Assembly (NCBI GenBank): GCA_004431415.1
Contig: QPMI01000005.1
Location: forward strand, 992,001 to 1,056,000
Direction: 5' to 3'
DNA from: Cyanophora paradoxa CCMP329
Taxonomy: Eukaryota; Plantae; Glaucophyta
DNA length: 64,000 nucleotides
Shown here in pieces: positions 7,511 through 51,033 of the stretch. The notes under the pieces are model-generated. The model did no database searches, was not told the DNA's origin, and was given only the letters and a program-made list of their open reading frames with translations. The position numbers were made by a program, and so were the translations under genes. Each line of letters starts with the position of its first letter. Position 1 is the stretch's first letter.

Positions 7511-8678
7511 ATTACTTTGAAGCGCACCGCATTCGCGTACAATAAAATCGAGGGCGGAGACGGTGTCGGCAGTGGCGGGGCTGCTAGCATCAGAGGTCCC
7601 GTGGACGGGGTTTTGGCGAGCACTGTTCTGGTGGAGGGATGCTCTTTTGCCGCTAACCAGGTGCGGCGTTTCCAATCAATAAAAGACACATTCATTAACA
7701 CAATTCGTTAATCCAGGCTCCACGACTCGGAGGGGCGCTGCATATTTCTGGCGTTTCAACCACAACCGTTCTCGCTTCCAACTTCACAAGCAATGGTCTG
7801 TCGTGGTGCCCGCTGGACTGCAGCAGCGACGAGCCGTCCTCGAGCGCCGTGGCCGGGATTCCATTCGGAGGAGGAGCGCTGTACATTGCCGGCCGCACGC
7901 GGGATCCGAAGAGTATTGTAGAAGTGCGCGATTCGATCTTCCTCAACAGCTCGGACACGGCGTGCGGAACAGAGCTAGCTGTGGGCCTGGGCCAATCCTT
8001 TGGCGCCGATTCCGGAGGAGGCGCCATTCTCGGACAGCAGCTGCACCGGTTCTCGATCACGAAGACGGACTTTATCGGCAGCCGCGCCGTCGGATCCGGC
8101 GGCTCCGTTTTGGTCGCCGGGTACCCGTCTCCGGGTGAGGAGCCGGACGTTGACGTCCAGGCCGTGCGTTTCGAGAACAGCAGCTGCGGGACGGACGGAG
8201 GGGCGCTCGCCGTGCCGGAGTACATTGCGAGATTGCAAGTCTCAGCGTCGGAATTCGTCCGTTGCAGCAGCCTCGGCGCTGGTGGAGCGCTGGTCTCCAA
8301 GGCCGCATCGACATCGGTGGAGGGCGCGTCTTTCTCCGAATGTGGAGAGAAAGGCTGGACGCAAGGCGGCGCAATGTACATCGAGCATAGATCGTCGACA
8401 ACGATCAGGCGGACGTCGATTGCCGGGGGCCGGGGCCGGCAGGCGGGCGCACTCGTTTTAGCGGCAGGCGCCGCCGGCTCGTCCGCCAACTCGCCCTTCG
8501 CCGCTTCGTCATCGAAATGTGGCGCAAATGGAGGTTCCAGCACGGCTCAGGCTGACGGGCAGGTGCTCATGGAAGACGTCGATATCACAGATGCTCAAGC
8601 CACCGACTACGGCGGGGCGCTGGTGCTGAAGGGCCGGCTCATTCTCGACGGCCGCGCGCTGCGCGTCAGCCGAGTAAG
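7511..8678 (+). pseudogene. 5' visible part of a large surface/membrane protein gene with parallel beta-helix (Pmp/POMP-like GGA[I/V]..F..N) repeats; interrupted by a LINE
   Basis: ORFs 7394-7711 and 7849-8709 contain GGAASI, GGALYI, GGAILG, GGSVLV, GGALAV, GGAMYI, GGALVL with FxxN/FxxC spacing. Intron GTGCGG..ATCCAG at ~7661-7716. The frame ...GRALRVSRVS continues as SGIKGGGIYVDS after 22468. The true start codon was not identified. Confidence 0.85.
8662..8678. repeat. Left target-site duplication (17 bp) of the LINE
   Basis: CGCGTCAGCCGAGTAAG is identical to 22452-22468. Removing the element and one copy restores the host reading frame. Confidence 0.97.
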
Positions 8679-9254
8679 TTTTTTTTTGCAAAAGTGGACG
8701 TCGCATTGATACACCACGGCACATGTATCAATGTTCTACGTGACGCGCCCTTCCGACCGGTCATCTATCTAGCCGAAGATGCTAGCGAGGTGCCGGCCAT
8801 GGGTCGCTCAATATGGGAGGTTCGCCTGAGTGGGGGAGCCATGGTTTTCGGGGATAGCCGTAACCAGACCCGCGCGCCCACCCCTTGATCAACTCCTCCA
8901 TCCCTCATGAGCCCTGGAAGTGAAATGTCTCGCAGTCCGCCGCCCTCCCTTGTCGCCGCTCCGCCACCCCTCCTCCTCCTCACTCTGCCTCCTCCCTCCT
9001 CCTCACCTGCGCCCCAGGACCCCGATTAATCGGTGTCCCGTTCTGTCAAGGTGAAGAAGGTGGTAGGAGGAAGATATGAGGAAGGAGAGGGAGTGGGCGG
9101 AGGCAGCGGTAGGGGGTGGGCAGCGGATGCGGGGCAGGGCAGGGAGCGGTGCCGGGACGGCAGAGTGGAGTGAGCGTGGGCACTGACAGGCGGCGCAGAG
9201 AGCGGGAGTGCGGAGGCGAGGCGGGTCGCGAGGGGTCGGGAGGGGTCGGTCTGA

Positions 9255-9395
9255 GTAGGGGGGTGGCCGAAGCCAGAGGGGTGGCCGAGGCCGATGGGGT
9301 GGCCGAAGCCGGGGGGGGGCCGAAGCCGATGGGGTGGCCGAAGCCGAGGGGGGGCCGAAGCCGAGGGGAGGGCCGAAGCCATAGGGGTGGCCGGA
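9255..9395. repeat. ~18-bp minisatellite (GGGGTGGCCGAAGCC..) near the LINE 3' end, ~8 units
   Basis: Repeated GGGGTGGCCGAAGCC / GGGGGCCGAAGCC units. On the - strand they read GFGHPx / GFGPPx. Confidence 0.8.
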
Positions 9396-10814
9396 GTCAA
9401 CGAGGGGTTCGGCACTTGTGAGTCGGTTGGGGCTGGGGGAGGAACCGTAGGGGGCCGCGGGGCGGCACCGTGCGGGGTCCCGGTCGGGGGGGCCGGCTGA
9501 AGCGAGGAGGGGGGGGGAGGGTCGGCTACTTGAAGCGTCGTTAGTGGTTTGTACACTCCAGGTGCGAAGAGGGACGTGATTGTGGGTTGTCCAGCAGGTA
9601 TCGACACCGTTCGCGCTTTTTTGGTCCCGCGCTTGGGGGTCTTGCGACCGGCTGCCTTTCTTTTTGCCGTAGGTACGGGTGGGGCGGGTGCAGAGGCGGG
9701 AAGGGGAGGGGTCATGGGGCGCGGGCGTTTGGGTGCCGGGGCGGGGGGAGTAGCGGTTGTCCGTTTGCGTGAGGCAGGCGACGGGCGAGTTCGTTTCGAG
9801 GGAGGGGCCAGGGGGAGCGTTGGGGCGGGGCGCTTGGAAGGTTGAGTAGCGGACGTAGGGCCCGCGGGCCGAGCGGGCAGGGTGCCATTGTCGGGGTTCT
9901 TGTGGGAAGGCTGCGTTGGGGGTGCAGCAGGTTGGGAGGCAGGTCGAGAGTATGGGGTGGTCTCTGGGCGAGCGGGGCACTTTCCCCGTCTGGCGTCGGA
10001 GTGGGCCTGGAGGGCAGCTGCGGAGGCAAATTGGGTGCCACAGGTGCAAGAGAAGTCAGATGTCCCGGCGGTGGGTCCTGCATCGGGCGGTTGGGGGAGG
10101 AGGGGCCTGAGGGGAGGGGCGGCCTGGGGTGAGGGGCGGCAGGGAGTCGTGCTATTGCTTGGCGGATATTTTCCAGGAGAACCCAGGGTTGGCCTTCCGA
10201 GTCCAATCCGCAGCAGAAGTCAGTGATGGAGATGGTATCATGGAGGGAGGGGGCGGGGGGGGGCGGGGGGGGAGGGGAGGGACTAGGCGGCTGTACTGGC
10301 GGCGAGCGGGAGGGTTTGGTGTCGGCATGTTTGCGGTATCGACGTTTGGTTCTGTCAGTGATGCCTTGTCGGAGCTCCCAGGCGTGGTTGCGGGCGCAGC
10401 GGTCCCTCCAGATCGCACGGAGGTGTTGGTCGAGGAGTAGCGCTAAATCTTTTTGGATTGACATTGTGGTGGTCTTGTTGATGCCCAGGGCTGCGCAGAG
10501 GGCGGGCAATCCTGCCGGGGTACCGAGGCGCAGGAGGGCAGGGGCGGGGAAGGGGAGTATGTCAGCCAAGGCCGGGCTAAGCTTTGTCCATAGGGTATCG
10601 GTAAGACCTGGGGGGCGGAAAAGGGCCGGATTTTCGGTGGGGGAGAGGAGGGCGGAATGGAGGGGAGAGGCGGGGTCAGGGGAGACGAGGCGGAGGAAGG
10701 GAAAGAGTTGAAAAATAGTGTCGTCGTGTCCTAAGGGTTTGGGCGAGTGGCGGAGAACCCGGGTGCGGAGGAAGGTCACGAGTGCATCCTGGAAAGCTTG
10801 GAGGAGGAGGCGAG

Positions 10815-11130
10815 CGGCGGGGCAAGTAAATATGTGAATGAAGTCTTCGGGGGGGTGGGTTGTAGGGTCGGGCTGTCTGGGGTCTGCGGCTCTCGGTGGG
10901 GAAGAGGGCGGGGGGGAGCCCGGGGGGGTGCACGTGGCAGGGGGCGGGGAGGGTGGGGGTGGGGAAGTAGGGTCCTCGGGGACTGGGGCAGGGGTGGGGG
11001 GGAGGTGACAGAAGGGGCAGTGGGCGATACCGTCAGGAAAGAGAGGGCCGTATAGGTCGGGGTCGTGGAGGAGGCGGACGGTGAGGGAGGGGAGGCCTCC
11101 AAGAATGCACTGGAATCTGACTTTGCGGAG
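10815..11130 (-). CDS. zf-RVT-type CCHC zinc knuckle of the LINE polyprotein, with a Pro-rich insertion
   Basis: GGLPSLTVRL..CPFCH..(Pro-rich)..PEDFIHIFTC, followed by an IWRDRC motif typical of L1-like ORF2 C-termini. Confidence 0.8.
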
Positions 11131-11449
11131 GTGATCGCCTGTGGGGGTACGGCGGTCCGGTGGCTTGTCGGACACGAGGGAGAGGGCTGGGGCGAGGGTA
11201 ACGTGAGGATTGCTGAGGACGGCCCCCGCGTTGCGAAGCTGGCGCCAGTCGAGGTATTGGGAGAGGGAGGCTTCGGCTAGGAAGTGAGAGCGGGGGTCCC
11301 CCTCAACGCGGTATGCATGGAGTCTGCCTCTGTAAGGCTCGGCTCCTGGAACTGGGCCTTGGGATGACGGGGGCGGGAGGCCGACGCGGATGAGGAAGCA
11401 TTTGAAACTGTGAGGAATGAAGAGAAGGGCTGAGAGGGGGGCGTCTGGG

Positions 11450-11495
11450 GCCGTTTTGGCGAGCTTGTCAACGGCGTCATTGTGGCAGTTGTCAG
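11450..11495 (-). CDS. RNase H, C-terminal helix carrying the fourth acidic residue
   Basis: NCHNDAVDKLAK matches the GNExADxLAK RNase H signature. It lies in ORF 9712-12768(-), ~3.6 kb downstream of WVPSH. Confidence 0.75.
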
Positions 11496-11989
11496 GAGTA
11501 TAGGCTGGGTTCGGGATACGGCTCTTGGCCGGGGTCCTGGCCGCCTCTTTCTTAGCGGCCGTTTTAGATGCTTTGGCGGACCGTGGTGGCGGCTGGGCGG
11601 CGTCGCGGTGAGCGGCTTCAGCTAGGATGGTCGCCGCCTCGAGTGGGGTCACGTGGGACGGCCGGAAGAGACGGCGTGCTGTTGCGGAGGCTTCGTTGCG
11701 GGCCAGGTCGGCGAGCTGAGAGGCGAGTTCTTGGGCGTAGCGAGCACCGGGAGGGAGGGGGGTGGCGGGCCCTGCAGGGCGAGGCGGGGTAGACTCAAGC
11801 ACAGTTGGGGAGCGCGGGAGGGCTGGGCGGTCGGGGGAGGGTGGTGGGGAGTCGAGGGTAGGGAGGGTGCCGCCGGTGGAGACCGGGGGGCGGCGTGGCG
11901 GTCGGTGGCGCCCCGGGAAGGTCGGTGGGGGTCTGAGGGCCGGGAGGGCAGGGCCACAGCATATAGGGTCGAGGGTGACGGACCCGTAG

Positions 11990-12715
11990 CAGAGGCTGAG
12001 GGCAATATATTCACGGTATCTGCGGAGCGCAGCATTGTCGACCTGAATGTAGGCTGGGGGGCGGGGCAGGTCCGACGGGGCAAGTGCTGAGGATCGGCCG
12101 GAGCGACTGAGTAGGTCAGCTGTGAGGAGGAGGAGAGGGCCGCAGGCCGTGCTGTTGGGAGGCTGGAGAACGGAGAGGGATGTCTCCGGGCGTAGGTAGG
12201 TCCATCTGCAGAATGGAGTGAGGGGGAGGGGAGAGCCAGAGTCGCGTTGACTCCAAGTGGCCGCCAAGTCTTGTGCAAAGGAGACAAGGTGATCAGGGAC
12301 GTCGAGGGAGCCGTTGTGAATGTAGAACGAGCGCGTCTGAGGAAATAAAGCAAGTAGGTGCCAGTGTCCCGGGGGGCCCTGAGGGTGCCGGGATCTGCCT
12401 GAGGGAAGGGTCGGCAAGGGGGCTGGTGGGGCATGATGAGTGGGGCGATAGGTAAGGATGGGGACAAGGACGAGGCGGGCATCGAGAAGGCGTCCGGGGG
12501 GAAGGTAGTGGTGCAGGGGGAGGGGGGCAGAGCCCCGAGAGTCAAATTGAGAGGCTGCACTAGCGGGGTAAGAGCTGGACGACAGGAAGTAGGTAGGGTG
12601 AGGCGAGGCCAGGGCGGCTTCGCGGGAGGAGAGCATGTCAAGGAAGGCTTCCACGAGGGGGAGGCTGAGGGCGGCATTCGGCCGGAGGTGGATAAGGTCG
12701 CCTCGTCGAATGAGG
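11990..12715 (-). CDS. Ulp1/SENP-like (peptidase C48, clan CE) cysteine protease domain with intact catalytic residues
   Basis: DLIHLRPNAALSLPLVEAFLDML..TYFLSSS..LVLVPI..GHWHLL (His 12364-12366)..FYIHNGSL (Asn 12313-12315)..LQPPNSTACGPLLL (Gln 12163-12165, Cys 12142-12144). Confidence 0.82.
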
Positions 12716-13229
12716 GAGTGGCGGTGAGGGTCAGGTCGGGGGGCGGGTGGGAGGGGGGGTTTCGACATGAGAGTTTGCTCCGCGCAGTAATCATTGTCTG
12801 CAAACCGGAAGGCATTCCCCAGCCAACTTTTCTCCGCCAGCGCTAGCGTCAGGGGGCGAGGGAGGGGAAATTCAGTCGGGTGAGCGGGGGTTCGGCCTGG
12901 GGAAGCAGTTGGTCGGGCCTCGGGCGCCGGGGGGCGTGGGGGTGGGGGAGGGCAGGGTGGGGGGGGGTGGGAGCTGCGGGGAGGAGGGAGGGGAATTGGG
13001 GACCGGGGGTTACCGGTGTAAGGGACGGGGGGGGGAGGGGAGGACGGAAGGGAGGAGGGGTGGGGTCTCGCTTGCGTCTAACCGGACGGCGGGCTTTGGC
13101 TGCCGTGTGCTGGGAAGGGCGGGAGCTGGTGCGCGGGGTCATGCGCTGTCGTTTTGTTGTGAATGCCGGGTCGTTGGCCTGGACTGTCCCCAGGAGGACC
13201 TCAGGGTCCCGGAGAAGGAGAGCGGCCGC

Positions 13230-13850
13230 CCAACGCTCCCGGTAGATGGGGGCGTGGAAGGGGATGGGGCGGCCCCGTCCTTTGCCGTACAGGTGGACTT
13301 CCTCACCGCGGCCAATGAACTCAGCAGCGGTCATGACGAAGAGAGCGTCTTCACCCGTGTGAACGTTTTTCCAGGCTTGTGTGGGGAAGGTGCTGGTGTC
13401 GTACTTCCAGGCCGAGCGTGGGGAGGAGTCGCCGGGGCGGAGAGTCGCCGTCCACCAGTTGATGACCCAGTCTTTAAGAGGGGCCGTGACGTCGGAGGCG
13501 GGTTTGCGGGTGACGTCCAGGATGCGGATTTCGCGGAGGCGGGCCGAGATGATTGCTAGTCGCCAGGGTCGGGACCCAGAGGGGGGCAGGGGAGGAGAAT
13601 ATAATCGTATTCCGTTGGGGAGAAAGGGTGCGGGACGTAGGGTCGGTCCAGTTGTGGCTGGCCTGCGCGGGCTTTGATAGAAAGGGCAGTGGGGGCTGTG
13701 CCCATGAGGATCGAGGTTGCGTGGGAGGACGAGAGGAAGAGGCACTTGGGGGTGGTCGGGGCATGCAGGCGGAAGGAGACTTGGCGGTTTTGGAGAAGTC
13801 TGAAGAAAGCGTCGACGGGTTCTGCAGGTATGGGTTGTGCGAGGAGAACG
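13230..13850 (-). CDS. Degenerate Ulp1/SENP-like (peptidase C48) domain, predicted catalytically dead
   Basis: AEPVDAFFRLLQNR..KCLFLSSS..YDYILLPC, frameshift, RPWRLAII..REIRILDV..WKY..PTQ..GEDALFVMTAAEFI. The layout follows C48, but HW is replaced by PW and DCG by EDA. Confidence 0.6.
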
Positions 13851-15077
13851 GGTGTGGCCAGGTGGGCCCCAGACCGAGGGTTGGGGTCGATGAGGGAGAG
13901 GGGGGCCGCTTTAAGGGCAGCCAGGCGAGATTTTATGCCGTCGAGGAGGGGAAGTACTCGGCGATCATACCTGGGGCCGTCGGGGTCGATGGCAGCTGAG
14001 TAGGGGATGGCTCGGCGTCCATAGCGTTCGAATAAGACAGGAAGGGCGCCGGTTTGGTCGCGGAGAGGGAACGTGGGTGGGGGGCCAGGCGGGGCGGGGG
14101 TGGGGTGGCAGTGCGGGCAGGAGAGGGCGGGTCCCCGTGCCCATTGTTCTGCGATCAGGGAGGAAATAGGGGTGCCCCACATGCCAGGGTCGCAACGGTG
14201 GTACGCGACCAGAGGGGTGCCAGCCTCGGTCTGGGAGGTGGGGGCGAGTGTAAGGTCCTCGTCCCAGTACCAGGCGGGGAGAGGCGTGTCACGGTCGGCG
14301 GGGACAGCGGGTTTGCAGAGGGAAGTGGGGTAGAAGTGCCAGGTGGGGCCGGAGCCCCTAGGGTGGGCTAAGTAATAGTCGAGGGCGAGTTTCCTTGTAG
14401 GCCCAGGATCAGGGTGGTCAACATCAGGGGCGTCCTCGGGGAGAGGTTGAAGGAAGATTGGGTTGGGAGGGGAGCAGCACTGGAAGGAGATGTTGTGAGT
14501 GATGTCTCTGCGTCCTAAGGCTGCAAGGAAAGCGGAGTAGGCGCGGAGGATGTCACAGTCCGAGACGATAGTCAGGTGTTCGTCGGAAGGAAAGAGAGTA
14601 TGAGCTTTGGGAAGTCGGATGCAGCGGTTCCAGATGACGGTGTCCTCCGCCATGAAGGCGCGTTCAAGTCTGGCGGACGCGAGGGGGACAAGGTCAAGGA
14701 CCAGATGGGTGTTGGTAGTCTCGGAGGCATCTACATAGTCAACAAGGTCCGCTTGGCAGCGGAGGAAATGGTAGTCGGCGGGGCTGTCAGCTAGGATATA
14801 TGTGCGAATGTGCCGGCGAGGCGGGAGGAGGGACGAGAATAGTGACGGAGGGAGGGGCGGGGAGGAGTCGTCCGAAAAGAGGAGTCGGGCGTCGGGGATG
14901 TCCATTCCACCAATACAGTGGTAAGGAGCCGAGGCAGGGAATGTCTGCGGGGCGGTAGGAAGGGGGGCAGCTGGTCCGCTGCGGGGACACGGGGTCGGCG
15001 GGGGGAAGGGGGGCCGGGCGGCGGGTCGTCGTTGGTGTCGGAGCCGTTGCAGGTGGCCGCGGGATGGTCTTTGGTTG

Positions 15078-15495
15078 GTGAGAGGGGACCCACTGAAGCG
15101 TGACTTGGAAGTTCGGGTCTTGGGCGATACGAATGGCGTATTGCGTTCGAGCGTTGAGGAGAAGGGCCCCGTCCTCTCGGCGGAGCAGGGTGCGGAAGTT
15201 GATGGGATGGGAGAAAGATGAAGGGTCTTGAAAGGCGAAGGCTGTCAGGGCTCGGATAGTGTTCTGACTGTCCGTGATAATTTTCCCGCCCGTGGGCCCG
15301 AAATACGTGAATGCTGCGGAGATTGTGCCTGCTAGCTCTCCCAGGTTCACGTTATGTTGGACGCCGGGGAGGCGGTGGGCGAACTCGATTTTGTCAGGCA
15401 GGTCGGGATTATTTTCGAGGGGTGCAAGGCCGGCGTAAGTGGTTCGGACAGAGGCGGAGCCCTGTTTTTGTGTGCTGGCGTCCGTGTATATTACC
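15078..15495 (-). CDS. RNase H, N-terminal portion (D-E-D and His)
   Basis: ORF 14787-15647(-): VIYTDAS, RLPGVQHNVNLGELAG, IITDSQN, VTLQWVPSH. Confidence 0.9.
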
Positions 15496-17249
15496 CGGGG
15501 AGTAGTTCCGGAGGGAAGGGGCGGGGAGTTTAGTGCGCGGAGTGTAGGGCAGAGCTCTGCGAAAAGGGCTCGGGAGGTAATGAAAAGGAAGTCGAGCCCG
15601 GCCGGGGATTCATAGAAGGCGCGGTCGGCTTGTGATGTGGGGGTCATAAGGCGTGGGCGTCTCTCGAGGGCAACATTGGTAGCTTGGGCCTCCGCTCGGA
15701 AAGAGTCCCACCAGTCAGTTTCCCGGAGCCAGAGATCGATGAAGCCAATGTGTGTGATTTCGCGGGGGAGGTTGGAAGGGGGGAGTTCGGGGTCATATTG
15801 AGCAGGAGGGGTAGCTGAGGAGGGGTCAAGGCGGGCTTTTTTAGCTGCGCGTGTGGGTTGAGCACGGGGGGATGCTGCCCTCTAGAGTGGGAGCATGTGA
15901 AGGCGGAGGTGGAGTCGGGCAGCTGCCGGGAGCGGGTGGGCACCGGCCTATTGAGATTGGAGAGGCTCGGAGACCAGCCCTTCGATTCGCACGACGAGCC
16001 TGCCGGGATTCGGCGGACGTGAGATGCGTACTCGACCCATCGGCAAGCAGTCGTAGAAAGGCCCAGCTCGCGATGAAGCTGTTCAGAGCCGCAGTATTTT
16101 GGGTGAGGGCAAAATTGGAATTCCAGTCTGCGTTCACGCCAGGCGGGGTCGAGCTCAAGCGCCGAAAGACCGGGGTCGCGCGAGGAGAGGCCATCATATG
16201 GGGTGAGGCAGTAATGGACGAGTTCCACCCCATAGTTATACTCTGAATCCCGGGGGCAGTTGGGGTCCGCGTCAGGGTCCTCGGAGGCCGGTTCGTCCAG
16301 GTGTTCGTCCGGGATCGGGGGTTTCCCAACGACGCGGCCAACTAGGCCTTGGGATGTCCATACAAAATCGCCAAGGTTTAGTCCCGCAAGGACGGCGTTA
16401 GCTTGGAGAGAGCGACGAATGTCTGGGATAGAGGGCGGTGGAGGCATAGGGTGGCGGGGGAGGAAAGGGGACCGGGTGGAGGGGCGGGGAAGAGAGAGTT
16501 CTTCGCGGACAGCGTCCCACCAGGAGGGGGCACGTTTGTAGTATGCCGGGACACGGCCGTGACTCCAGAGGAGGGACCATTCGGCAAGGGAGCCGTCAGG
16601 GGCCGTGATGTCGCGGATTGTGAGGAGGCCGCAGCGATAGAGTCGCTGACCGGCTTGTTGGAGGGTGAGGGGCGACAATTGCGTTGATATAATATATTCT
16701 CGTCGAAGATGGGATCGGCGGGAGGGGAGGCCATGTGTCCAGGAGTCGCACGTTGTGAGGATGTGATGGGAGGAGGAGGTCAGGTCTGCCGTGATGGCAA
16801 GCGTAATATTTTTCTGTAGTGTGAGGGGCCCCGAGGGGAGGTTCGGATATTCGTGTGGGAGAAGGGGAAGCCCGTATCGGGCCTGGGTGTCGAGGACACG
16901 TTGTCGGTATATTTGGCCGTAGAGTGATGATGTGTGAGAGGCTAGTTCCTGGCGGAGGCGCTCGTCGACGCACTGCTGTTGACGTTGGATGACGGCTAGT
17001 GAGGGAAGGCGATAGATGGAAGAGAAAGCAGCCGTGGATACGGACTGGGCCAGGTTGGCCGTGTGTTTGGCCGCGGTGAGCCAGACAGCGTCGAGGGATT
17101 GGCATTGGGATGACGTTAAGGTCATGATGCGGAGAGGGTATGCCAGTTTAGGGAAGAGAACCCGGTGTAGTATCACTTGGAATTCGTGAACGGTAATCTT
17201 CTTTGTGGCTAGAACGGAGATTGCGGACTGGAGCTGGGACTTGAGTAGA

Positions 17250-18430
17250 CGGACTTGGTGGGTCCAAGACAGGTTCGCAGTAAACTGGACGCCGAGGACG
17301 CGGAATGGTGTTGTGGGGGAGAGGATGTGGCCAACCTCAGCTCTGGAATCGCCGACGCCGACATAGTATTTGCTCTTGACTGGCGCTTCGGATCGGGGGG
17401 GTTTCCAGTGGAAAATTTCCGTCTTTTTGGCGTTCAAGTTCATGCCATGGATATGGAGAAATTCGGACAGCCAGTCAAGCATATGTTGGAGACCCTGAGC
17501 CGAGCTGGCAAGCATGGTGGTGTCATCGGCGTATGCGAGCACAGAGACTGTGGGGCAGGGACCGGAGGGGAAGTAGAGGGGTTCGCCAGGGCATGGTGGG
17601 CGGGGGGAAAGGGGGCGGGTAGGGTCAGATCGGTGCGGCCCGAGTTGGTATCCGAAATTGGACTGAGTCGCTCGTTCTTCGATGGCGGTGAGAGCGGCGT
17701 CGAAGAAAATGCGCCAGTGGAGAGGGGCTTCGATGCCTCCTTGGGGGAGGCCACAGGGGACTTGAAAATATTCCGTGCGGCCGTGGGGGGTAAGGATGCA
17801 CGCCGTGCGGTGCTGAGCTGCTTTTTTGTGGAGGGCTATGTATCGTTTCCCTTCAGGATGGAGGTGGAGTTGGATACGATTAAGGCTGAGCTCTTGGCTA
17901 TGCCAGGAGACACTGTCGTAGGCGCTGGCAATATCCCCAGGCCGCCGAAGATTGGCTTTTTGAACTGGTGCGCGTCTCGAGGGAGGATCGGAGGGCGTAG
18001 AGAACAGGGTCGGTAGATTCGCGGCGACAAAAGCCATAGTTGCGGCCGCGTAGAATGTTATGTGTATCAATACGGTCTTCCATGCGGTGGGTCAGGAGGC
18101 CCGTGACCAGCTTCCAGGTGACTTCTTGAAGGGTGATGGGGCGGAGATCGGCAAGATCTGCTGAATTATCACGTTTCGGGATAGCGTAGACTTGACCGCG
18201 AAGTGCGTGGTCGGGCACGTGGCCGAGAAGAGTGGATTGAACTAGAGCTCGGATGGCGTCGCGCGAGGTGGTCCAGTGAGCCGCGGACTCGAAGCTGTTG
18301 ATCTCGTCTGTAGAGTGTGAGGCGGCTAAGGCCTGGCGTTCCGTCTTGGAGAGGCGGAGGGGGGACCAGAGCATTTTAATCATTCCGTTCGTGAGGCCGG
18401 AGGGACCGCCTGCGCCATTGGACAGGGACG
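17250..18430 (-). CDS. LINE reverse transcriptase domain (two -1 frameshifts near 17.94-17.98 kb)
   Basis: GPSG, AIPK..DLRPITL..WKL, NYGFCRREST, DIASAYDSV, GLPQGG, LAYADDT (17522-17533), GMNLNAKKT, FRVLGV. Confidence 0.97.
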
Positions 18431-19504
18431 AGATGAGGCGATCGAGTTCGGGGTCCTCTGGCATGGCCATTAGTCCGTCCCAGACGGCGGGGGTGAAGTG
18501 GGAAAGGGGTCGGTACTGGCGTTTCCAAAATCTGCCCAACCAGGCGCCGTTTTCTATGTCCGCGAATTTCGTAGCTATGGCATCCAGGTTTGGGGCAGCC
18601 TTGCGGAGTCGCCAGAAATTTTTGAAGTGATCCAGATGTGCGCGTTTAATTTCATTGGGATCGGTGAGCACTTCGGGTAGTCCCGCTGCCGTGCGGGTGA
18701 GGTATAGGCGGGGGGCGGATCGGAAACGGGAGAGGAGGAGTTGAATAGCCCGACCCATACTTCGACAGTGGGACAGGAGGTGGCGGCGGGTGTCAATATT
18801 GCGAGCAATGTCGGCTTCGGTATATGCACGGCGATGATTGTCCAGGGCGGCCCGCGCCTGTAAGTGCCATGTACTTAGTTGAGTATGGTACTCGGCGATT
18901 TCAGAGCCTGTAATGGTACCATTCTCGAATTCAGGGTAATTAGGAGGGTCGGGGAAAGCGAGGAGGGAGGGGCAGAAAGCCAGTGTGGTGTCCGAGCCCG
19001 CAGCTTTTCGGATGTCCGTCACGTCTTTGGGAAGGTCCCGGAGGACAGCCCGGATAGTTTCGTCAGGCGGGTGGTCTGTGGAGCCTTGGTGCGCCCAGTC
19101 GTGTAAGGCCTGTCCAACGCGGCCAACGAGTTGTTCGTCGTCAGCGTCCAGTGCAGATAGATGGTTGAACTTAGCCATATCTCCCTGGGCAGCGACGCGG
19201 TGTTGGAGGACTTTAGCAGTAGAGAATTCTTGAGAGTGGGCGACGGACTTGATACTTTGGGCGATAGCACAGAGGAGGGAGCGGTGGGATTTCGTGGCGC
19301 GTTGGGCGTAGTCGGGGCTGCTCTCGGGAGTGAGAAGGAGCTGGATATACCGCTGGCCGTGTTTATTGAGAAAAGTTTCGACAGCGAGCTTGAAAGCAAG
19401 CCGGATGGGTGCAGGTTGGGCGGCATAGTTGAAGAGAGGAGGGAGAGGTTGGGGTCGGGGCTGGCGGGGCTCCGTAGGGGGGGCAGAGAGCACGCCTTCG
19501 GTTT

Positions 19505-20385
19505 TGAAGGTCGCAAGTACGGGGAGATGGTCGGCTGTGAGTAAAGGGGACGGTCGGCCAGGGACATAGAGTGTGCGAGTCCCTAGTGATCGGGCCGCGA
19601 GAGTGGGGGAGGCAAGGGCGTAGTCGATGCGGGCGGCGTCCAGGAGGGGGCGGTGGCCCTGGTCGTCAAGAAAGTCGGCGTGGCGGGACACGTGTGTGAA
19701 ATCGCCCGGGGTTCCGGTATCACAAAGACCCCAGGTCTCGCGGAAAAGGGTCCATATTTCTGCGTAGGAGTTCGGGGGGGTAGTTTCAGTGCGCCGGTTG
19801 CCCCCGGTGATCCGGTCGTTGCGCGGGGAGTATGTGCTATTCATATCGCCGAGTACCAGGAGATGCGTCTGCCAGTCAGGTTCGTGGATGTCGGGTGCGA
19901 CCTTCGCGGTCAGGTATTCGGTGAGGTCGTGGAGCTCTTTTTGCAAATTGTCGTGCCCGCAGTCCGGCACGTAGAGTGAGAGGACAATGAGGCGCTCGCG
20001 CGTGCGCGGGAAGTCAAAGCGAGCGCCGGCTACTCGGCCGTCAAACGCGTAATCCGCCTGGCGGTGCGCTGCATAGCTTGCTGAGATCCACAGCGCGGAG
20101 CCGGCGGTGCCAGGACGGGCCGCGGATGGAGGAGAGTAGACAAGGTAGCTAGATTTATGGCGGCGGACTGCTGTCTTAATCAGGTGATCGCGGATATTGG
20201 GCGGAAAGGGCTTCGAGGGGGGGCGGTCGGTAGGGACCATGTCGACCTCTTGAAGAGCAACAAAGTGGCAGTCCCAGTCACGGCGGCCATAGTCAATTGC
20301 GCTGATAAATTTAGTTGCAATATTGTTGCCGCTCGCCTTCCCCTCCAAGCGGCGAATATTCCACGTGAGGGCGCGGAGGTTCAGC
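19505..20385 (-). CDS. LINE apurinic/apyrimidinic-type endonuclease (EEP) domain
   Basis: In ORF 17898-22631(-): LTWNIRRL, FVALQEV, LSLYVP, LVLGDMNS, FTH, RIDYAL, ADHLPV. This is the complete EEP motif set. Confidence 0.95.
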
Positions 20386-21489
20386 TTCGCATTTGCCGCG
20401 TCCGGGGGGTGTGCTAGGACAGGGATCTGGAGCGCATCTCGGTGGTGGCGGGCGTCAATTCGGTCAGCGGTGTACAGAGAGGGAGGGTATAATGTTAGAA
20501 GGGACGAGGCCGCCGTGACTAGTGTCGGAGAGGAGAGGGCGGCGGCGGCGGTAGCGACTGCGGCGGCCGTTGCTGTGCTGGGCTCGATGTCCGCAAGGGC
20601 GACGGGGACAAGGGCGGCGAGGAGAACACAGAGGAGGAGGCGTGTGGGGAGAGGGGCCGGGCGGCTGAAGGACCGTTGGGCTTGTGGGGCGCGGCGCGCA
20701 GTCCGGCGCCGGCCCAGGGGTTCGAGACCGGCGTCGACGTCAAGCGGCGCAGAGTCCGTGTCGCCTGCGCCGGCGGGGCCAGCGCTAGCGTGCACGTGGG
20801 CACTAGCGCGGGGGCTGACTGCGAGGTACGCAGCCGTACACATGGCTAGTACACGTCCTGATCCGTACGCGTGGTTCGTACGACAGCTCTCGGCGTCATG
20901 CAGCGCAGCGTCTGAGCTTGAGGCGCCGGCGTTGGTGGGGCCAGCACTAGCGTGGGCGCCAGTGCTAGCTGCGTAACCTGCAATGGTAGTATCGGTGTTA
21001 CAGCTAGGCCCTGGCACGTGGCCGTACGCGGGGTTAGTGGTACTAGCTATAGTGCAGTTATTCCAGCCCCAATCGCGGAGTGCGGAGGCACTGGGCCGCT
21101 TCGAATCATTGTCCGACTCACAAATCGAATGAATAAAAAAGTCTGTTCGCGTTGGAGTTTTTTGACGGCACGCGGTGGGGGTACCGGTAGGCGCAGTTTC
21201 GTCCGGGGCCCTGGGACGTTCCGACCGGGGAGGGATGCTCCACCGGCCACTGCGGTATGCGACGGCTCTGATGGGGCTTCCGTGCTCCGGTCCAGCGATC
21301 AAGTTCTGGAGCATGCCGTAGCGCGGTCTAGCGACAGTGGTCCATAAGGTGCTCCAGGTGCAGACACGGCGACTGAGCTGCGAAAGTACTTGCGCGGCCT
21401 GCTGAATGCCGAGGCGGGCAGCGCGGCGTGGCGCGGCAGCGACAACAGTAGCCCGACGGGGATTGACTTCTTGCGGCGCTCTGAGTCCC

Positions 21490-22451
21490 GGTGGCGGCTT
21501 CTCTTCAGGTCCAGGTCCGTCAGCGCGGGCGCGGCGCCGGGCGGCGGGGAGGCCGACCGCGTCCTGCAGGTCGCGCGGCGCCGGCGCGGGCGGAGGCGAG
21601 ACGGGCGGCGCGCTGGGGCCCGGCGGCAGCTTCACTTTAGGTCCAGGTCCGTCAGCGCGGGCGCGGCGCCGGGCAGCAGGGAAGCCGACAGCGTCCTCAG
21701 GTCCAGGTCCGTTGGCACGAGCGCAACGCCGGGCAGCGGGGAGGCCGACAGCGGTCTGCAGGTCGCGCGGCGCCGGCGCGAGCGGGGGCGAGGCGGGCGG
21801 CGCGCGGGGGCCCGGCGGTGGTTTCACTGCAGGTCCAGGTCCGTCAGCACGGGCGCGGGGCGGGGCAGCGGGGGAGCCGACCGCGTCCTGCAGGTCGCGC
21901 TGCGCCGGCGCGGGCGAAGGCGAGACGGGCGACGCGCTGGGGCTCGGCTGCGGCTTCACCGCAGGTCCTGGTCCGTCGGCACGAGTGTGGCGCCGGGCCG
22001 CGGGGAGGCCGACAACGGTCTGTAGGTCGCGCGGCGCCGGCGCGAGCGGGGGCGAGACGGGCGGCGCGCGGGGGCCCGGCGGCGGCTTCACTTCAGGTCC
22101 AGGTCCGTCAGCACGGGCGCCCGACGACAGTCTCGCCTCAGGCGCAGGGCCATCGGCCCTCGCGCGGCTGTGGGCGTCAGGGAGGCTGGGGGCGTCCTGC
22201 GGGTCGCGCAGGACTGGCGCGGGCGGGGGCGGGGCGGGCAGAACTCGAGGGCCCGACGGCGGTCTCGCTTCAGGTGCCGGTCCGTCGGCCCGCGCTCGGC
22301 TGTGCGCGTCGGGGAGGCTGAGGGCGTCCTGTGGGTCGCGCAGGGCTGGCGCGGGCGGGGGTGGGGCGGGCGGCGCTCGAGGGCCCAGCGGCGGTCGCGC
22401 CGCAGACGCGGGTCCGTCGGTCCTCTCGCGACTTTGGGCGTCGGGGAGGCA
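21490..22451 (-). repeat. Tandem ~132-bp (44-codon) repeats at the 5' end of the LINE, ~7 units
   Basis: CAGGTCCAGGTCCGTCAGC-like marker recurs at ~21505, 21637, 21698, 21830, 21962, 22094, 22271. It translates as ARADGPGP..PPPGPRAPP.SPP.APAPRDLQ..VGLPAARRR. Confidence 0.9.
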
Positions 22452-22468
22452 CGCGTCAGCCGAGTAAG
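22452..22468. repeat. Right target-site duplication (17 bp) of the LINE
   Basis: Identical to 8662-8678. Confidence 0.97.
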
Positions 22469-25400
22469 CAGCGGGATCAAGGGCGGCGGAATCTACGTCG
22501 ATTCCGAGAGCACGAACGATCGGGTCCTCTTGCGCGATTCTACTTTCTCCGAATGTGCAGCATACACCGGAGGCTGCGTGTACGTCGCCAACTCGAACGG
22601 GCTTCGCCTGAAGAATGTCACCATGGGCCAAAGCTCGGTGAGACTACTATCCGCGCCGTCCTTAGAGGGGGCTAGCAGTCACTTTATTTTCTATGCAGGT
22701 CGAATCGAACGGAGGGGCCATGGTCGTTGAAGCCGGAACCTCCGTTTGCGAGCGATGTTCATTCATCGAAAATGCAGCGGAAAGCGGCGGAAGCGTCTTT
22801 GTGACCGGCTCTGGAGATCTGGAGCTTCTCGAGTCCGAAGTCAGACTCTCGAACGCCCAGCAAGATGGTGCGCGGATCGCAAAGTGACAGGCTAAAGTTG
22901 CTGCAATTTGCGCTCCTCACTCTACATTCCTCGCAGGCGGCGGGGCTGCCGCGAGCGGACAAGGGACACTTCGAGCGACTCACTCGTCATTCGCGAACTG
23001 CCGGGCGATCAACGGCCGCGGGGGCGGGATCTGGTGTGGCAAGCAGTCTCGGTGCCGTCTCCAGAACTCGTTCATTTCGAGCTCTTCCGGGCAAAGCGGC
23101 GGCTGCATCTCCGTCGACGCTGCAGCGGACGTTTCAGTGGCGGACAGCTCCATGTCTCGATGCGACTCGGAAGTGCTGGGAGGCTGCATTCATGTGCAGG
23201 GAGAGCCGCTTGCTCAGCCGGACCGCGTGCATCTGCTCCTATCTCGCTCGACCGTTTCGGCCTGTGTCACAGGAATGGCGGGGGGCGGCGTTGCAGCGGA
23301 CAAATTTGCCGCGGTCCGAATCGACGGGAGCAGCCTCGTCGGCAACGTCGCCGGGATTCCGTCGCTGTCCGAGGGGCAGGTGGCCGTCGGGGACGCCGCG
23401 GGCGTGTACGCCGCCGGGCACTCTTCGGTCTGGATCGCGGCGTCGACCCTAAGAGAGAACGCGGCCCAGCGCCGCGGAGGTGCGGTCGGGACGGAAGCGG
23501 ATGCGCGCGTGGCCGTGGACGGGACTGTGCTGGAAGGCAACGCCGCGAGTGCGTGGCCCGTCAAATTGTACAGAGGCGGAGCGTTGAACGAAGTGCGCAG
23601 ATGAGGGCGGGGGCGTGTACGCCTCAAGCAATGCGGTGTTGAAGCTAACATCTTGCACGCTCACAAACAACACTGCGACAAGAGGCGGCGCCGTGTTTGC
23701 TAAGCGCGGAAATGCAAGCCTTGATTCAACCGCAGTCAGCGCGAATTCAGCATCGCTCGGCGCTGGGATCTTCGTCGAAAAGGATGCCTGCGGCGGCATC
23801 GCTCTAGCGAATTCTTCAGTTCTCTCGAACCGCGCCCAGTTCGGCGGGGGTGGAGTATACGTGAACACGCCCGACCTCTCCGCATGCGCGAGCTTCTCCG
23901 CCCTTGCGTGCGCCGCCTACGCGGAGAACACGGCAGCCTACGGGCCTGCGTGCGCCACGCCCACCGAGCGAATCGTGCCGGAGCTGCTGTCGCGGCCGAT
24001 CAACGTTGCGAGCGGCAAGCCCATTCTCTTTGAGGTGACTATGAAGGACGCTTACGGGTCTGTGCATCGACAACTGTCTTCCTCGTCACGCCCTTCTGAA
24101 TCTATGCAGTTCCATCGTGGCGGATACGGGGTCGTTCATTCAAATCTCGGCATCGAGCACATCGTTGACGGGTGCTTTTATTTATTATCCTCGCAGCGTT
24201 CTTTCTTGCGTCGTCTAGATCCGACTCGTCGTGCGCAGGAACCACCACAAACGCCACGCTGAATGGCGTCGCCCTTCTCTCGGACGTCCGCTTGATCGAG
24301 ATGCCGGGGGCGGCGTACAACCTCAGCTTCTTTGTCGCGGATCGGCAGCTGCAGCCGGCCCCGCTCTCCGTCTTCCTGCGCGAGTGCATCCCTGGAGAGA
24401 TCCTCGACCTGGTGGCCAGAATATGCAGCGAGTGGTGTGTCTGTTTTTGGAGCTCACAACGTTCTACTGGCTTCGTAGATCGAATGTTTGTTTTCCGCAG
24501 TGGGCCGAATTTCTACAGCCTCGACCCGCAGGACGCGGCTTGCAGCCGGTGCCCTGAAGGCGCCATCTGCGACGGGGGCGCACGGCTCTATGCGAAAGAG
24601 TGCGCGAGCGCTTCTTTTAATTAATCGCTTACATGTTGCTCTGTAAATACTGAGATATATATCGATTGCCTAGGGGCTGGTTCCAGAGCACGTTCGACCC
24701 GAACATCTTCATCGAGTGCCTGAACGGGAAGGAGAGCTGCCTCGGCGGACAGCCCTCAGCCTCGAGCTCTAGCCCGCTTCTCCTCGCCAACGACACGTCG
24801 TGTCCTCGGAACGCGACGGGCCAAGGGGAAGCGACGACATCGAACACGACCCTGTGTCCTACACGCGCAGCTGGGCGCCGAAACCTGCTGGCGATTTTAG
24901 TGGATACGGAGCTCGAGAGCCAGTACGTGTCCAAGTGTAAACCCGGGTACGAAGGGCAGCTGTGCGGAGTCTGCGTTAACGGTTTCGGAAGGGCTGGTGC
25001 GATATATACGGTTTTGTTTCCGCGGTGGTTTTTTGAGCGACTCGCGTTGCTCGCAGGGGACTACGCCTGCACCGAGTGCTTGTCCCCGTCCGCTTCTGCC
25101 GCCATCGGATTTCTCGTGGCGCTGGCTTTCCTTTTCTTTGCTGGGTGCGTTTTAGTTTCAGAAATATAACTGAAATCGCATTTGACTATCGCGATCGAAT
25201 CCTGCAGGTACATCACGTGGACGACAATCAAGGATGCGAGTAACACGGACGATGAGGAGAAGCGCGGCATCTTCCTCCAGATCCTTCTCGAGTACCTGCA
25301 GCTCATCACCCTCTCGAAGAGCCTGTCCGTACGGTGGCCGTCGGTGCTGAACGGGCTCCTCGGGGCCGAAGAGGCCATGGTCTCTCCGATGGAGCGCGTC

Positions 25401-27844
25401 GTCAACCTCGACTGCGTGCTCGGACTGACGAGGGAAGGCCACTCCGGAATTCGCCCAGTCTTCGCGAAGCTCCTGTGCGCCACGCTTTGCGTTTCACAGT
25501 TTGAAGAAGTTCGGATCCATTGACTACATTCTAACGGCGTTTTTCAACAGGTTCTACATTCTGCTCCCGATGGCCGCTTTCAGTGCGCGACTCGCAATCG
25601 ATCCTGTGAATCAGTTCTGCCATTCCTGACCCTGAGAATCAGTTTTGCCATTCCTGATTGCTCTCTTGGTGCCTGTGATGCATGTTGCATCAAAGCACAT
25701 TGTCAAATGGGTGTCCGCGGTCTTCAACCCAGTGATGCAGCGGATTCGGCGCCGCAATTCAAGCCTGAACGCGGCGATACCAACGAAGGGCGAAGTCGAC
25801 TCCAGGAAGCAGGCCTCGAAGCGCGCCAAATCCAAAGGCGCAGGCAGAGCTCGCAGCGTCATTGTCAACGACGGAAAGGCGAGCAAGGGCGACGAGCTCG
25901 AGGACGCGGACGCCATGCTGGAGGCGGTGGCAGAGATGGACCTGCGCAAGGGCAGCTTCTGGGAGAACGCGAAGCACATCTACGTCGTCGGGGCCATCGT
26001 CCTCGTCTTCTTCTTCCAGCCGATGATCACTAGCAAGCTCACGTCCCTCTTCGGTGCATCCCGCCCCCGGCGTTTGGCCGTTTCCGCCTCCCAGAGCCGC
26101 CAGCGCCGTGTTCTGAGCGCGCTGCAGGCTGCGTGGACGTCGGAGGAGGCGTGTCTTTGCTGGCCCGCGACCCCAGTGTCGACTGCGCGTCGGCGGAATA
26201 CCGCAGCTGGATTTACGGCGTCGACGTCCCTTTCCTCGTGTACTCGATTTACTTGCTTACGTGATCTGTTCCTACTTTGCCCATGCTGATTTAAATACTT
26301 TACCTGCGCAGGATCTACGGAGTTGGAGTCCCAGCTGGGACGGCCATCTTTCTCTGGGTTTACCGCGACCGCATTCGCGACGACCAGGACCGGGAGTTCC
26401 GCCTCTACTTCTCGTTCCTGTACAGGGTCCGCTTCGATTTTGAGACTGCAAAGTGAGGCACATCGACGCAATGCTCGAACAGGGCTACAAGCGCGAGCGG
26501 TTCTGGTTCGCCTTCGTGTCGATGATTCAGAAGACGGCGCTCGCTGTTTGCATGGCGTTGTTTAGCGAGCGGTGCGCCGGTTTCTGTCGTTGTTAATTCT
26601 GCATTTAATGCTGGCTTCAATCGTGCATGTGCATGTAGGCCGCTCGTGCAGGCGCTCATGGGAGCGTTCGTGCTCTTCGCCGGCCTGGTTCTGCACATGA
26701 AAATTCAGCCGCGCTCCAACGCTCGAATCGGCAGCATCGACGTCGCCTGCCAAATGGGCGCCCTCGTTACGATATGGCTGTGCGCCTTTCTTCTTTAATT
26801 TACATCACGCCTATGTCTCGTCCTAGGTCTTCGCGGTTATGGTCATGGTCTTATGGTGCTGCAGAGGAATATTCCTCTTCCCAGACGCGGGGCTCTCCGA
26901 GGAGCAGAAGAACTTCGTCGCCGCCCTCGGATTTATTTCCAACATTGCCTTCGTCGCCATTCTCATACTGCTCTTCCTCTTTGGCGAGGAGCGGGTGCGC
27001 TGCTTCTCAGAGGTTGATTATGTGCGCGTTTTATGCATATGGTGCGTTGACCGGTACCGGCTCGACCCAGGTGTTCGAGAAGCTGAGGATCGTTATGCCG
27101 TGGATGGCCGCACCCCCGCGCCTTTTATCGGATTCGAAACCTGCGGACGGCGAAACGAATGCGAATGGGGGGGAGTCCATCGAGGGCGCCGTCTTCTCGA
27201 ACTTGGACGGCGACGGCGACGGCGACGGTGATCATGACGAATTGCAACAGCAGCTCGAGCCGGACCGGCCCGGGTACCAGCAGGGCCGGGGACGGCGCCC
27301 GCTGGACTGGGCGACGGAGGAGCGCCCCGCGGAATCGGCGAGGCGCGCTCGCGATGATCCGTCCGCGGCCGCCGGCGTGCCGCCTCTCTGGCACATCGAC
27401 GCCGCGGATGCGGACGGAGAAGAGGGAAGAGTGTCGACGTCGCAGCCACCGCCGCCTGCGCTGCCCGTGGCCAGCCTCCTGCTGGCCGACGAGCTGAGGG
27501 ACAGGCTCGGCCGGCTCAGCCAGCTGTCGGTCTCCGTCAGCCGCGATACGCTGGCGCCGCCGCCCGCCCCCGGCGCGTTCTCGGCAGCCGCGTCTCCCGC
27601 CGCCACGTCGCCCGGGCGCGCCCCGTCCATCGCCGTCTCGCGTCCGTCGTCGGTCTTCGAATTCGACGAAGGGCACTTCGATTTGGTCGTGGAGACGCCG
27701 GGCGGGGCCCGCGGGGCCGCGGACCTGCGGCCGCCCGCCTCGTCGGCCGGCACCCGGACCCCGTCACCAACTGCAGGCGTGAGCCCCCGGTCCGGATCCG
27801 CCGGCTCGGAGCGCTCAGCGCACTTCGCGGGCCGACGTCAGTAG
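22452..27844 (+). pseudogene. 3' part of the same gene: more beta-helix repeats, Cys-rich (CxxC/EGF- or TNFR-like) stalk, multi-pass TM region, Pro/Ser-rich cytoplasmic tail; many short introns
   Basis: GGGIYV, GGCVYV, GGAMVV, GGSVFV, GGCIHV, GGAVFA, GGGVYV motifs at 22.5-23.9 kb. ECIPGE, CSRCPEGAICDGG, CKPGYEGQLCGVCVNGFGR at 24.4-25.0 kb. Hydrophobic segments IGFLVALAFLFFAG, IFLQILLEYLQLI, YVVGAIVLVFFFQPMI, ALGFISNIAFVAILILLFLF. GT..AG introns such as 22638-22698. Stop TAG ends at 27844. Confidence 0.85.
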
Positions 27845-29284
27845 CGATGCACATGCCCTTGCAATAAATCTCTTTTTGAATTGGGGCAGTTCTTTTCGGA
27901 AGTATACCTCTTTTTATATTTGGGCCATGGGAACTCCGGAAAGTATTCCGAGAAGTTCGCCGTCGGCAAAAGTAATATCCCTCGTATATATATTTACTTC
28001 TGTACGTTTCGTTTCGTTACATCTATTTAAAGGTGTCGTGAACTTCCTTTCGTTACAGCTATATACACTCAGGTATTGAACCGCCATAGCAGCCCGAATC
28101 GAATGAACTACAGATACTTTCGGTAGAAGCCGGGAAACTATTCGCCGGCGACGTGGCACGAAAAATAAAACGTTTAATTTCATCAGCTTCTTTGCATGTT
28201 TCGTTTCGCTACAGCTATATTTATATACTTAGATGTCATGAACTTCGAATTCGATTACTACGATACGCGGCGAACTAGGAATACGATTACCCCCGTCCTT
28301 TCCTTCTCCCCTGGTGTCGCCCCCTGGCGGAGCTGAAGCAATTGCAAGTGAAGATGAAGATGGGAGCTAATCATATTAATATTCCTGTTCTTCATATTCT
28401 CATGTCGGCACGACTGGGATGTCTGTGTCACCCAGCTCAAGCTCAAGGGGCCCCCGTCAGCTCTCGAAGGCGGCGCTGGGCCGCCTCAAGCCGCGCCCGC
28501 GCCTCGGCCAGGCCGCCTCAAGCCGCGCCCGCGCCTCGGCCGGCCAGCCCGCCGGCCAGGCGGCGCCTCGGCCAGAGGGGGCCAGAGAGGGGGCCAGGCC
28601 GGGCTCATGATCAGCAGAGGGGGTCGGCGCCGGCGCGGCCGCGGGGGCCGGCAGCAGCGACAGGGACTCCAGCAGCGCCTCCACGTTCTTTGGGGTACAA
28701 GGTTTCAGCGAGCGGTACGGCGACGAGGACGGGGGACGGGTACCGCGAGGAGAGCAACGTTGCCGCGGGCGAGGAAGGCGAAGGAGGGTACCCCCGAGAG
28801 AGTCCCGTCCGGCGGCTGTACCCCGGTCAGGGATAGGGGAAGTGGCGTGGGGAGGGGTACGCCGCGCCTGGAGCTCGGAGAGGAGGGCGGGTACGAAGGG
28901 CCGCTTGTTCACTTCGCAGAGCTGCGGGGTACGCGTTTCGGACGGGGGAGGGGTACGCTGGAATGGGCGGCCAAATGAGACCTGGAGGCGGCCGCGGAGG
29001 GCGGGGTCTGAGGCGACGAAATCAGTGAGGGGTAGAGGCGCGCCGCTGGGTTGAGGGGGTACGGACCGGCGACGGCGGCGGCGGAGAGGAGGGGTACGAA
29101 GGCGGCGCAGCGGACGGCGGCCCGCGCGTCGGCGTTCTCGTCGCGTTGTACCCCCTCCGACCCCCTCAGAGAAGGTGGAGGAAAGGCAGCGTGCGGGAGC
29201 CGAACCGGGGCGGGACACTCGGCCCAGCACGGAACGCGCCGGTGCTTCAAGCCGCGTACGAATCGAAGGCCGAACTCCGCGTCC

Positions 29285-37527: not shown

Positions 37528-38460
37528 CGGGCCCCAGAAGCCCGGGCCGGGCCGGTGCCGGCTGGCCGGCTTGGCGCTACCACCCGTACCCGGGGAGCAT
37601 GCCAGGAAGATCGACCTGGGAGAAATGAATCGCTTTCTTGTTCTTCAAGCGAGAGGGGGGGGGGAAGAGAGCACCGGGGGGTGCCGCGATTCGAAACCTG
37701 TGCCTGGAGCTCGGCTCCAAGGGCGCGCGTGGGCTCGGCGCTAGCAGCACTCGCTTTGAATCGGCGCGCATGCTCTCCAGTTCCAGTCTCGACGAAGCCC
37801 TCCGTCCTTTTCGCCCCGCGGTCGGCTCGCCTTGCCACGGCGTTTGGCACGCAGACGACAGGCACGGGGCCGTGCGCACGATCCTCGAACTTCATGTACG
37901 CTATAGATGCGTAGTTGCGCGTCCGGAGCGGCCGCGCCTTGCCGTTTTCCCGGGCCCAGAAGCCGCGCACGAGCCAGCGATCACCGCTACGTGCGCCCCG
38001 GTCGCTCATGACCTCAGCCGCTTGCCAACGCACTCTCCGCAGAGAGCTCTTTGCGTGGCGAGCTCCGTTCTCCACGGCGCGCTCCCCCCTTGCCCTGCGC
38101 ACAATCTGTGCGTTTGTTGACAGCCGGGCCTCCTCATTCACCGCTACAGCCTGGGTCTGGAGCACGCGCACTCGACATATGCAATGTACGTTCTCGGCGG
38201 AGCGTCGTCCTGCGCCGCCCTCGCAGCTCCGTGTGCCGCGCGCCGCTGACGTCCCAAAGCAGGTCCATTCGTGCTCCTGGCTCACGGATACGCGCACGTG
38301 GACTGACTGGGCCAGCGCGACCTTCTACCAGCATGCTAAATCTCGTTCGGGGGTCTTCCCAGCCCTCGCCGCCGCCTGCGCCGAGCGCCGCTGACGGCCT
38401 CCTACATACTGCAGATCGATTCCCGCTGCGAAGGCTGCACGAGGCCTAGCTTCACCTGCA
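37528..38460 (+). repeat. Left non-tandem arm (~0.93 kb) of a giant inverted repeat
   Basis: Near-identical reverse complement of ~52320-53236 (CGGGCCCCAGAAGCCCGGG.. vs ..CCCGGGCTTCTGGGGCCCG). The ORF track shows mirrored ORFs. Confidence 0.95.

Positions 38461-46274: not shown

Positions 46275-46324
<50 letters not shown>

Positions 46325-48438: not shown

Positions 48439-48474
<36 letters not shown>

Positions 48475-50976: not shown

Positions 50977-51033
<57 letters not shown>

Follow-up and report, generated by a model that had tools for sequence, protein, structure and literature searches.

We report a long interspersed nuclear element (LINE) of the glaucophyte Cyanophora paradoxa CCMP329 in which the ribonuclease HI (RNase HI, a type of RNase H) domain is split by an in-frame insert carrying two C48-like (Ulp1/SENP-type) protease domains. 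The element lies on the minus strand of a 64,000-nucleotide stretch of contig QPMI01000005.1 (positions 992,001 to 1,056,000; assembly GCA_004431415.1), hereafter the window, whose own coordinates are used throughout. Our analysis of this element, the window LINE, establishes the split layout, its conservation in a distant relative (the metagenomic protein P0001), selection acting on the insert, and the retention of five RNase H residues together with a protease triad. Judged by sequence comparison, the split layout is an evolved design, since the distant relative keeps it. Regarding function, we lean somewhat towards a reading in which the two RNase H parts would form one discontinuous domain, and the intact C48 domain would remove SUMO, NEDD8 or ubiquitin from host proteins.

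The divided RNase HI domain

The RNase HI core of the window LINE occupies 15078..15494 (minus strand; PF00075 positions 5-123 of 141) and contains Asp 15482, Glu 15338, Asp 15272 and His 15080, the same residues being present in P0001. An earlier annotation made by a model from the letters alone (the sequence-only reading) had correctly placed the motifs YTDAS (15474-15488), GELAG (15327-15341), ITDSQ (15264-15278) and WVPSH (15078-15092) and the end of the core at 15078. It had also recognized the closing motif, HNDAVDKLAK, far downstream; we locate this helix, with the last catalytic Asp at 11469, at 11455..11484 (minus strand), 6 nt away from the ~11490 quoted. The additional statement that the helix stands immediately before a zf-RVT region was mistaken, as 150 residues separate it from the first Cys of the zinc finger and Pfam zf-RVT is not matched in this element. 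The corresponding distances are 126 and 136 amino acids (aa) in P0002 and P0003, two uninterrupted metagenomic LINEs that are the nearest reverse transcriptase (RT) matches after P0001, at about 25% identity.

The Pfam RNase_H match ends at the His loop (E=2.4e-5; 25.0 bits, just under the curated cut-off of 25.8). From the His to the closing Asp, the distance is ~1,200 aa in the window LINE and 1,176 aa in P0001, compared with 10 in E. coli RNase HI and in P0002; thus, neither split element has its last helix ~10 residues past the His, as a contiguous domain does. All five catalytic residues (D-E-D-H-D) are kept in both elements. Conservation peaks locally at the closing helix, where 13 of 20 residues are identical between the window LINE and P0001, and a neck, consisting of the residues directly after the His and directly before the closing helix, is also conserved in both. 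In P0003, this His loop contains an insertion of 24 aa (P0003 1524-1558, L003), which indicates that this loop tolerates insertion.

For the closing helix, we used a motif pattern derived from independent RNase HI sequences, N-x-x-[ACV]-D-x-[LM]-A, which matches once in the six frames of the 64-kb window (at 11481) and once in P0001, at the orthologous place; it is present in 0.56% of shuffles. A position-specific scoring matrix (PSSM) puts the closing motif top in both elements (shuffle p=0.005 in the window). As a DNA pattern, the motif gave 23 matches in viral contigs, 12 of them RNase HI last helices; 11 of these 12 were confirmed by a profile that ends before the His loop, and their His-to-closing-Asp distance is 15-21 residues. 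An RNase H search in plasmids gave no match. A full RNase H profile also finds the closing helix, but this search is partly circular, the profile including sequences chosen by the motif, and it was not used as support.

The insert, its conservation and its cargo

The insert in the RNase H His loop measures 3,593 nt (11485..15077, minus strand), corresponding to ~1,200 codons when bases found in other copies are counted and to about 1,170 codons in P0001. It comprises a ~330-aa domain A, a C48-like pseudo-protease and an intact-looking C48 protease.

When 1.84 billion proteins were searched by HMMER with the RNase H piece as query, the one match was P0001, a single 3,720-aa open reading frame (ORF) on an 11.9-kb ENA metagenome contig. 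P0001 aligns to the window LINE from the apurinic/apyrimidinic endonuclease (APE) domain to the C-terminus, the whole insert included, with the same order and the same split. The RT is 57% identical, the RNase H core 45%, the parts of the insert 33-46% and the stretch running from the closing helix to the zinc finger 54%. Divergence at synonymous sites has reached saturation (proportion of synonymous differences, pS, 0.69-0.77 overall and 0.69-0.75 in the insert), and the nonsynonymous proportion (pN) of the insert, 0.43-0.49, is similar to that of the APE-RT linker and the RNase H. The saturated pS together with the lower pN indicates an old insert that is under selection at the protein level. 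Neither of two word-index protein searches with it gave a match, and no relatives were found in JGI metagenomes or viral contigs. The proposal of the sequence-only reading, an APE-type LINE that uses the His loop to accommodate C48 domains as cargo, is supported by the one-ORF P0001 with the same split, by the contigs of four sequencing runs and by the motif tests.

As assembled, the window copy contains seven frame breaks, and the sequence-only reading had advised a check against other copies. Within the 5.9-kb stretch covered by this check, outside which three of the breaks lie, the indels of other copies account for every break: these copies carry extra bases at 15865/15868, at 15008 and 14982, at 13588, and near 13000 (four bases, two of them deduced from the length of a contig). 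The extra bases, numbering 1, 2, 1 and 4 (the last equal to 1 modulo 3), match the needs of one continuous frame. All six listed indel places touch runs of four or more G, compared with 17% of positions by chance, and at 14982 the assembled allele is shown by essentially no contig. The location in G runs and the bases in other copies make the frame breaks look like long-read homopolymer errors. The window copy may therefore be intact, collapsed contigs being no proof.

In run X15, which we guess to be RNA, one contig crosses the upstream insert junction, a hint of transcription only. Contig depth in this run over 10400-16072 falls from 44 at the 3' side of the LINE to 12 toward the 5' side, a gradient that oligo-dT libraries would give, although contigs cannot prove transcription. 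Run X1 contains two low-depth backward joints, from 13043 to 10941 and to 10659, that link G-rich tracts.

Domain A (13950..14977, minus strand; 37% identity to P0001) ends in a conserved His-x-Cys...Trp...Cys-x2-Cys motif (~14105-14203), a possible zinc site, and has no match in Pfam, PHROG, NCBIfam or PDB. The first C48 domain (approximately 13150..13950, minus strand; 42-46% identity) was recognized by ESM Atlas on its P0001 ortholog, for which PF02902 appeared in 25 of 30 matches (best 0.95); as read from the alignment, the catalytic His and Cys appear to be replaced in both elements. This domain, C48-like by its ESM features alone, appears to be a maintained pseudo-enzyme.

The second C48 domain (11995..12762, minus strand) contains His 12366, Asn 12315, Gln 12165 and Cys 12144, corresponding in P0001 to His2635, Asp2652, Gln2700 and Cys2706 at canonical spacing. 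The triad and oxyanion Gln follow the clan CE order, and the His-to-Asp/Asn spacing is 17 in both elements. Sequence searches against Pfam, PDB, PHROGs and NCBIfam gave no match for either C48 domain of the window LINE. The Pfam blank, which bears on the C48 assignment that the sequence-only reading had made for 11990-12715, is overturned by three other lines: ESM Atlas gave PF02902 in 27 of 30 matches with the window domain (best 0.95); the P0001 domain matches PF02902 at E=0.0023 (18.2 bits, below the curated cut-off of 20.7); and Foldseek with a low-confidence model of the second C48 ranked a NEDD8 protease first (E=9e-4) in a list mostly of SENP, NEDP1 and CE effectors, at a predicted local distance difference test (pLDDT) score of 48 and a template modelling (TM) score of ~0.3. 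The top rank of a NEDD8 protease does not tell the substrate. A single-sequence AlphaFold model was unusable. Of the two C48-like domains, only the second keeps its catalytic residues, which corrects the sequence-only reading. A profile comparison between the two gave only E=0.02, and tandem duplication is therefore not shown.

Interpretations of the split

The reading that we favour starts from a young, multi-copy APE-RT-RNase H LINE family, an ancestor of which would have gained an in-frame cassette in its RNase HI. The cassette, made up of domain A, the C48 pseudo-protease and the intact C48, would have entered the loop that links strand 5 to the last helix. DDE transposases stay active with domains inserted between beta5 and alpha4 of their RNase H fold (PMC8230255, PMC7780238), and by this analogy the two RNase H parts of the window LINE may fold into a single discontinuous domain that is still active, the cassette protruding as a loop on the conserved neck in the manner of the DDE insertion domains. 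The intact C48 would act on host proteins close to the retrotransposon particle or the integration site and strip them of SUMO, NEDD8 or ubiquitin, which would blunt silencing or degradation, and the dead C48 would help to bind the modifier. Of the two roles that the sequence-only reading had offered, polyprotein processing and the removal of SUMO or ubiquitin from host factors, we favour deconjugation because the dead partner domain fits modifier binding and because it is the role proposed for other transposon-borne Ulp1 and OTU domains, which have been suggested to act on ubiquitin and SUMO pathways (PMC2836005).

Several observations weigh against this reading. The relatives found number just one. 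With eight residues, the closing motif is short, and its PSSM shuffle p in P0001 is 0.14. The region after the insert is weakly linked by profile to the uninterrupted LINEs, the C-terminus profiles of which reach only the zinc finger and the last motif, and these weakly. The second C48 of the window LINE has Asn in place of the catalytic Asp and a Gln-to-Cys spacing of 7 instead of 6. Finally, the C48 matches fall short of the curated thresholds, and model quality is poor (pLDDT 34 and 48).

The C48 protease might instead cut its own ORF of 4,100-4,500 aa, for instance after the conserved Gly-Gly in the stretch that joins the protease to the closing helix, to yield a two-chain RNase H whose assembly or activation would depend on processing. 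A precedent is the CE-clan protease pS273R, which cuts viral polyproteins at Gly-Gly-X (PMC8728581), and the ORF of the window LINE is unusually long. The candidate site (11869..11874, minus strand; STGG/T here and PSGG/T in P0001) is the only conserved pair inside the insert and falls in the linker that follows the intact protease; it is nevertheless weak, since the two sequences are ~40% identical, this linker is loosely aligned and one shared dipeptide is easily a product of chance, and the three other conserved Gly-Gly pairs sit in or around the RT and RNase H folds. The pseudo-protease better suits modifier binding, and LINEs are not known to need a protease for ORF2 function. We grant such maturation a limited weight; its most specific form, a self-proteolysing LINE in which the Gly-Gly cut would leave the last catalytic helix to be supplied by the C-terminal fragment and would time RNA degradation in target-primed reverse transcription, strikes us as rather improbable. 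It is also unlikely, in our view, that the cassette is real and selected while the RNase H is no longer a nuclease, serving as a structural or nucleic-acid-binding scaffold with a host RNase H doing the cutting. The domain is indeed highly divergent, with DAST for DGS and without any Pfam match in P0001, and a 1,200-aa loop beside the active site could hinder folding; the five catalytic residues are, however, kept across saturated synonymous divergence, and the closing helix is the conservation peak described above.

Were the closing motif a chance look-alike, the RNase H would be truncated after the His and the protease block would be an ordinary downstream addition. The brevity of the motif and its PSSM result in P0001 speak for this, but genuine RNase HI domains use the exact motif, its sole match in six frames of 64 kb occupies the orthologous position in the two elements and is as far from the zinc finger as expected, and Pfam coverage ends exactly where the missing part starts; we therefore consider a look-alike very unlikely. 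We give almost no credence to a nested insertion, intron or assembly chimera in a single copy. The assembled copy does have several frame breaks, but all six listed indels are in G runs, no target-site duplication (TSD) or poly-A was found bordering the insert, and in four runs the contigs cover the insert as they do its flanks, with continuous depth and with none skipping it. The insert is, moreover, in frame in P0001, which already refutes this alternative. The sequence-only reading had named a nested insertion beforehand as a test of its proposal, and this test goes against nesting, given the absent TSD, the contigs of four runs, the frame restored by the indels of other copies in the 5.9 kb covered, and the frame of P0001. 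Among single candidates, a nested element was rejected on the missing TSD and poly-A, an intron on coding selection and on the putative RNA contig over the upstream junction, and damage to a single copy was likewise rejected as an explanation of the split layout.

The element, its host site and known systems

The whole LINE copy measures 13.77 kb (8679..22451, minus strand), as bounded by TSD and poly-A, and shows a strong coding-strand C skew over 9-22 kb. The 5' TSD of 17 bp (22452..22468) is an exact copy of the 3' TSD (8662..8678), the sequence occurring only twice in the window, and a 9-nt poly-A tail (8679..8687, minus strand) follows a 3' untranslated region of ~315 nt; a TSD and a 3' poly-A are as in APE-type retrotransposons without long terminal repeats (non-LTR elements). 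Pfam places APE, RT and RNase H in this order in one ORF. The APE endonuclease lies at 19563..20369 (minus strand; PF03372, E=9.5e-6) and the RT at 17282..18180 (minus strand, upper bound approximate; PF00078, E=1.5e-15, and match to P0001), with YADD at 17522-17533 and a frame break near 17960. After the closing helix come a Cys-x2-Cys...His-x3-Cys zinc finger (10822..11019, minus strand), a Trp-x2-Arg-Cys C-terminal motif near 10410, and a Cys/His-rich C-terminal segment with the stop (9003..9206, minus strand; 48-50% identity to the end of P0001). Barring the seven frame breaks, the open frame has 4,483 codons from the 5' end and 4,104 from the first Met (21314). The 5' end consists of 132-bp tandem repeats in open frame (21473..22450, minus strand), and no ORF1 was seen; the copy may be 5'-truncated, or the repeats may be promoter-like monomers. 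A Cys/His cluster in the RT-RNase H tether (~16030-16120, minus strand; P0001 1420-1450) is conserved and possibly a zinc site, and a C2H2-like finger in the 3' tail (~10000-10054, minus strand; PF24761, E=4e-4) is not evident in P0001.

The window LINE lies antisense inside an exon of a host beta-helix-repeat gene (7699-8678 and 22452-28000, plus strand), which has beta-helix/PMP-like repeats, a DUF7630-like part and an apparent membrane region. The host frame is in register across both TSDs, and this continuity, together with the perfect TSD, makes the copy look recent. Elsewhere in the window, satellite arrays of 362 bp and 364 bp (38449-41741 and 45254-52322) with opposite strand bias flank a 168-bp array.

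Among LINEs, the uninterrupted P0002 and P0003 share with the window LINE the domain order, a His-type RNase H and the C-terminal motifs, but their His-to-Asp spacing is 10 and 34 aa, respectively, and they lack a protease. Three LINE fragments with RNase H (L002 964-4963) face the P0002 ORF head to head from the opposite strand. NeSL and Utopia-1_TSP are likewise non-LTR elements with a Ulp1-like cysteine protease within the RT protein; they are of the restriction-like endonuclease (RLE) type and have one protease, N-terminal to the RT (PMC4640811). The window LINE, in contrast, is APE-type, and its protease sits downstream of the RT inside the RNase H, together with a pseudo-protease partner. 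Against the features of NeSL/Utopia or Dualen, the window LINE gave no RLE match, and its APE is N-terminal with the protease after the RT. Dualen/RandI resembles the window LINE in being an algal LINE whose long ORF combines APE, RT and RNase H with a cysteine protease, and no split RNase H is reported for it. An RLE and the N-terminal position of the protease are further features of Dualen. Its protease is Josephin-like and not C48 (10.1101/2021.04.23.441226). Ginger1, Mutator/Mutator-like elements (MULE) and Helitron likewise carry Ulp1 or OTU proteases, sometimes beside a PHD finger; these are DNA transposons, and the Ginger1 protease is appended C-terminally, not placed inside a catalytic domain (PMC2836005).

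An APE-type LINE thereby joins the transposons with captured Ulp1-like proteases, and its pair of pseudo and intact C48 domains offers a defined system for asking whether transposon SUMO/ubiquitin proteases counter host control or act in self-processing. For annotation, such elements resemble a truncated RNase H plus an unknown ORF and are missed by Pfam. Our search of the open-access literature found no report of a retrotransposon with a split RNase H or with a protease lodged inside its RNase H; Ulp1 proteases as transposon cargo and insertions at this RNase H position each have precedents, and their combination appears to be undescribed. In Tn5, Hermes, RAG1 and the P element, the insertion is likewise between strand 5 and the last helix and activity is kept, the inserted domains being about 65-190 aa in the cited cases and binding DNA or GTP (PMC8230255, PMC7780238). 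The window LINE differs in having a true RNase HI and an insert of ~1,200 aa that includes separate enzyme folds; a true RNase HI can thus keep, for long spans of evolution, a multi-domain insertion of this size in the catalytic His loop, which is the position at which the insertion domains of DDE transposases arose.

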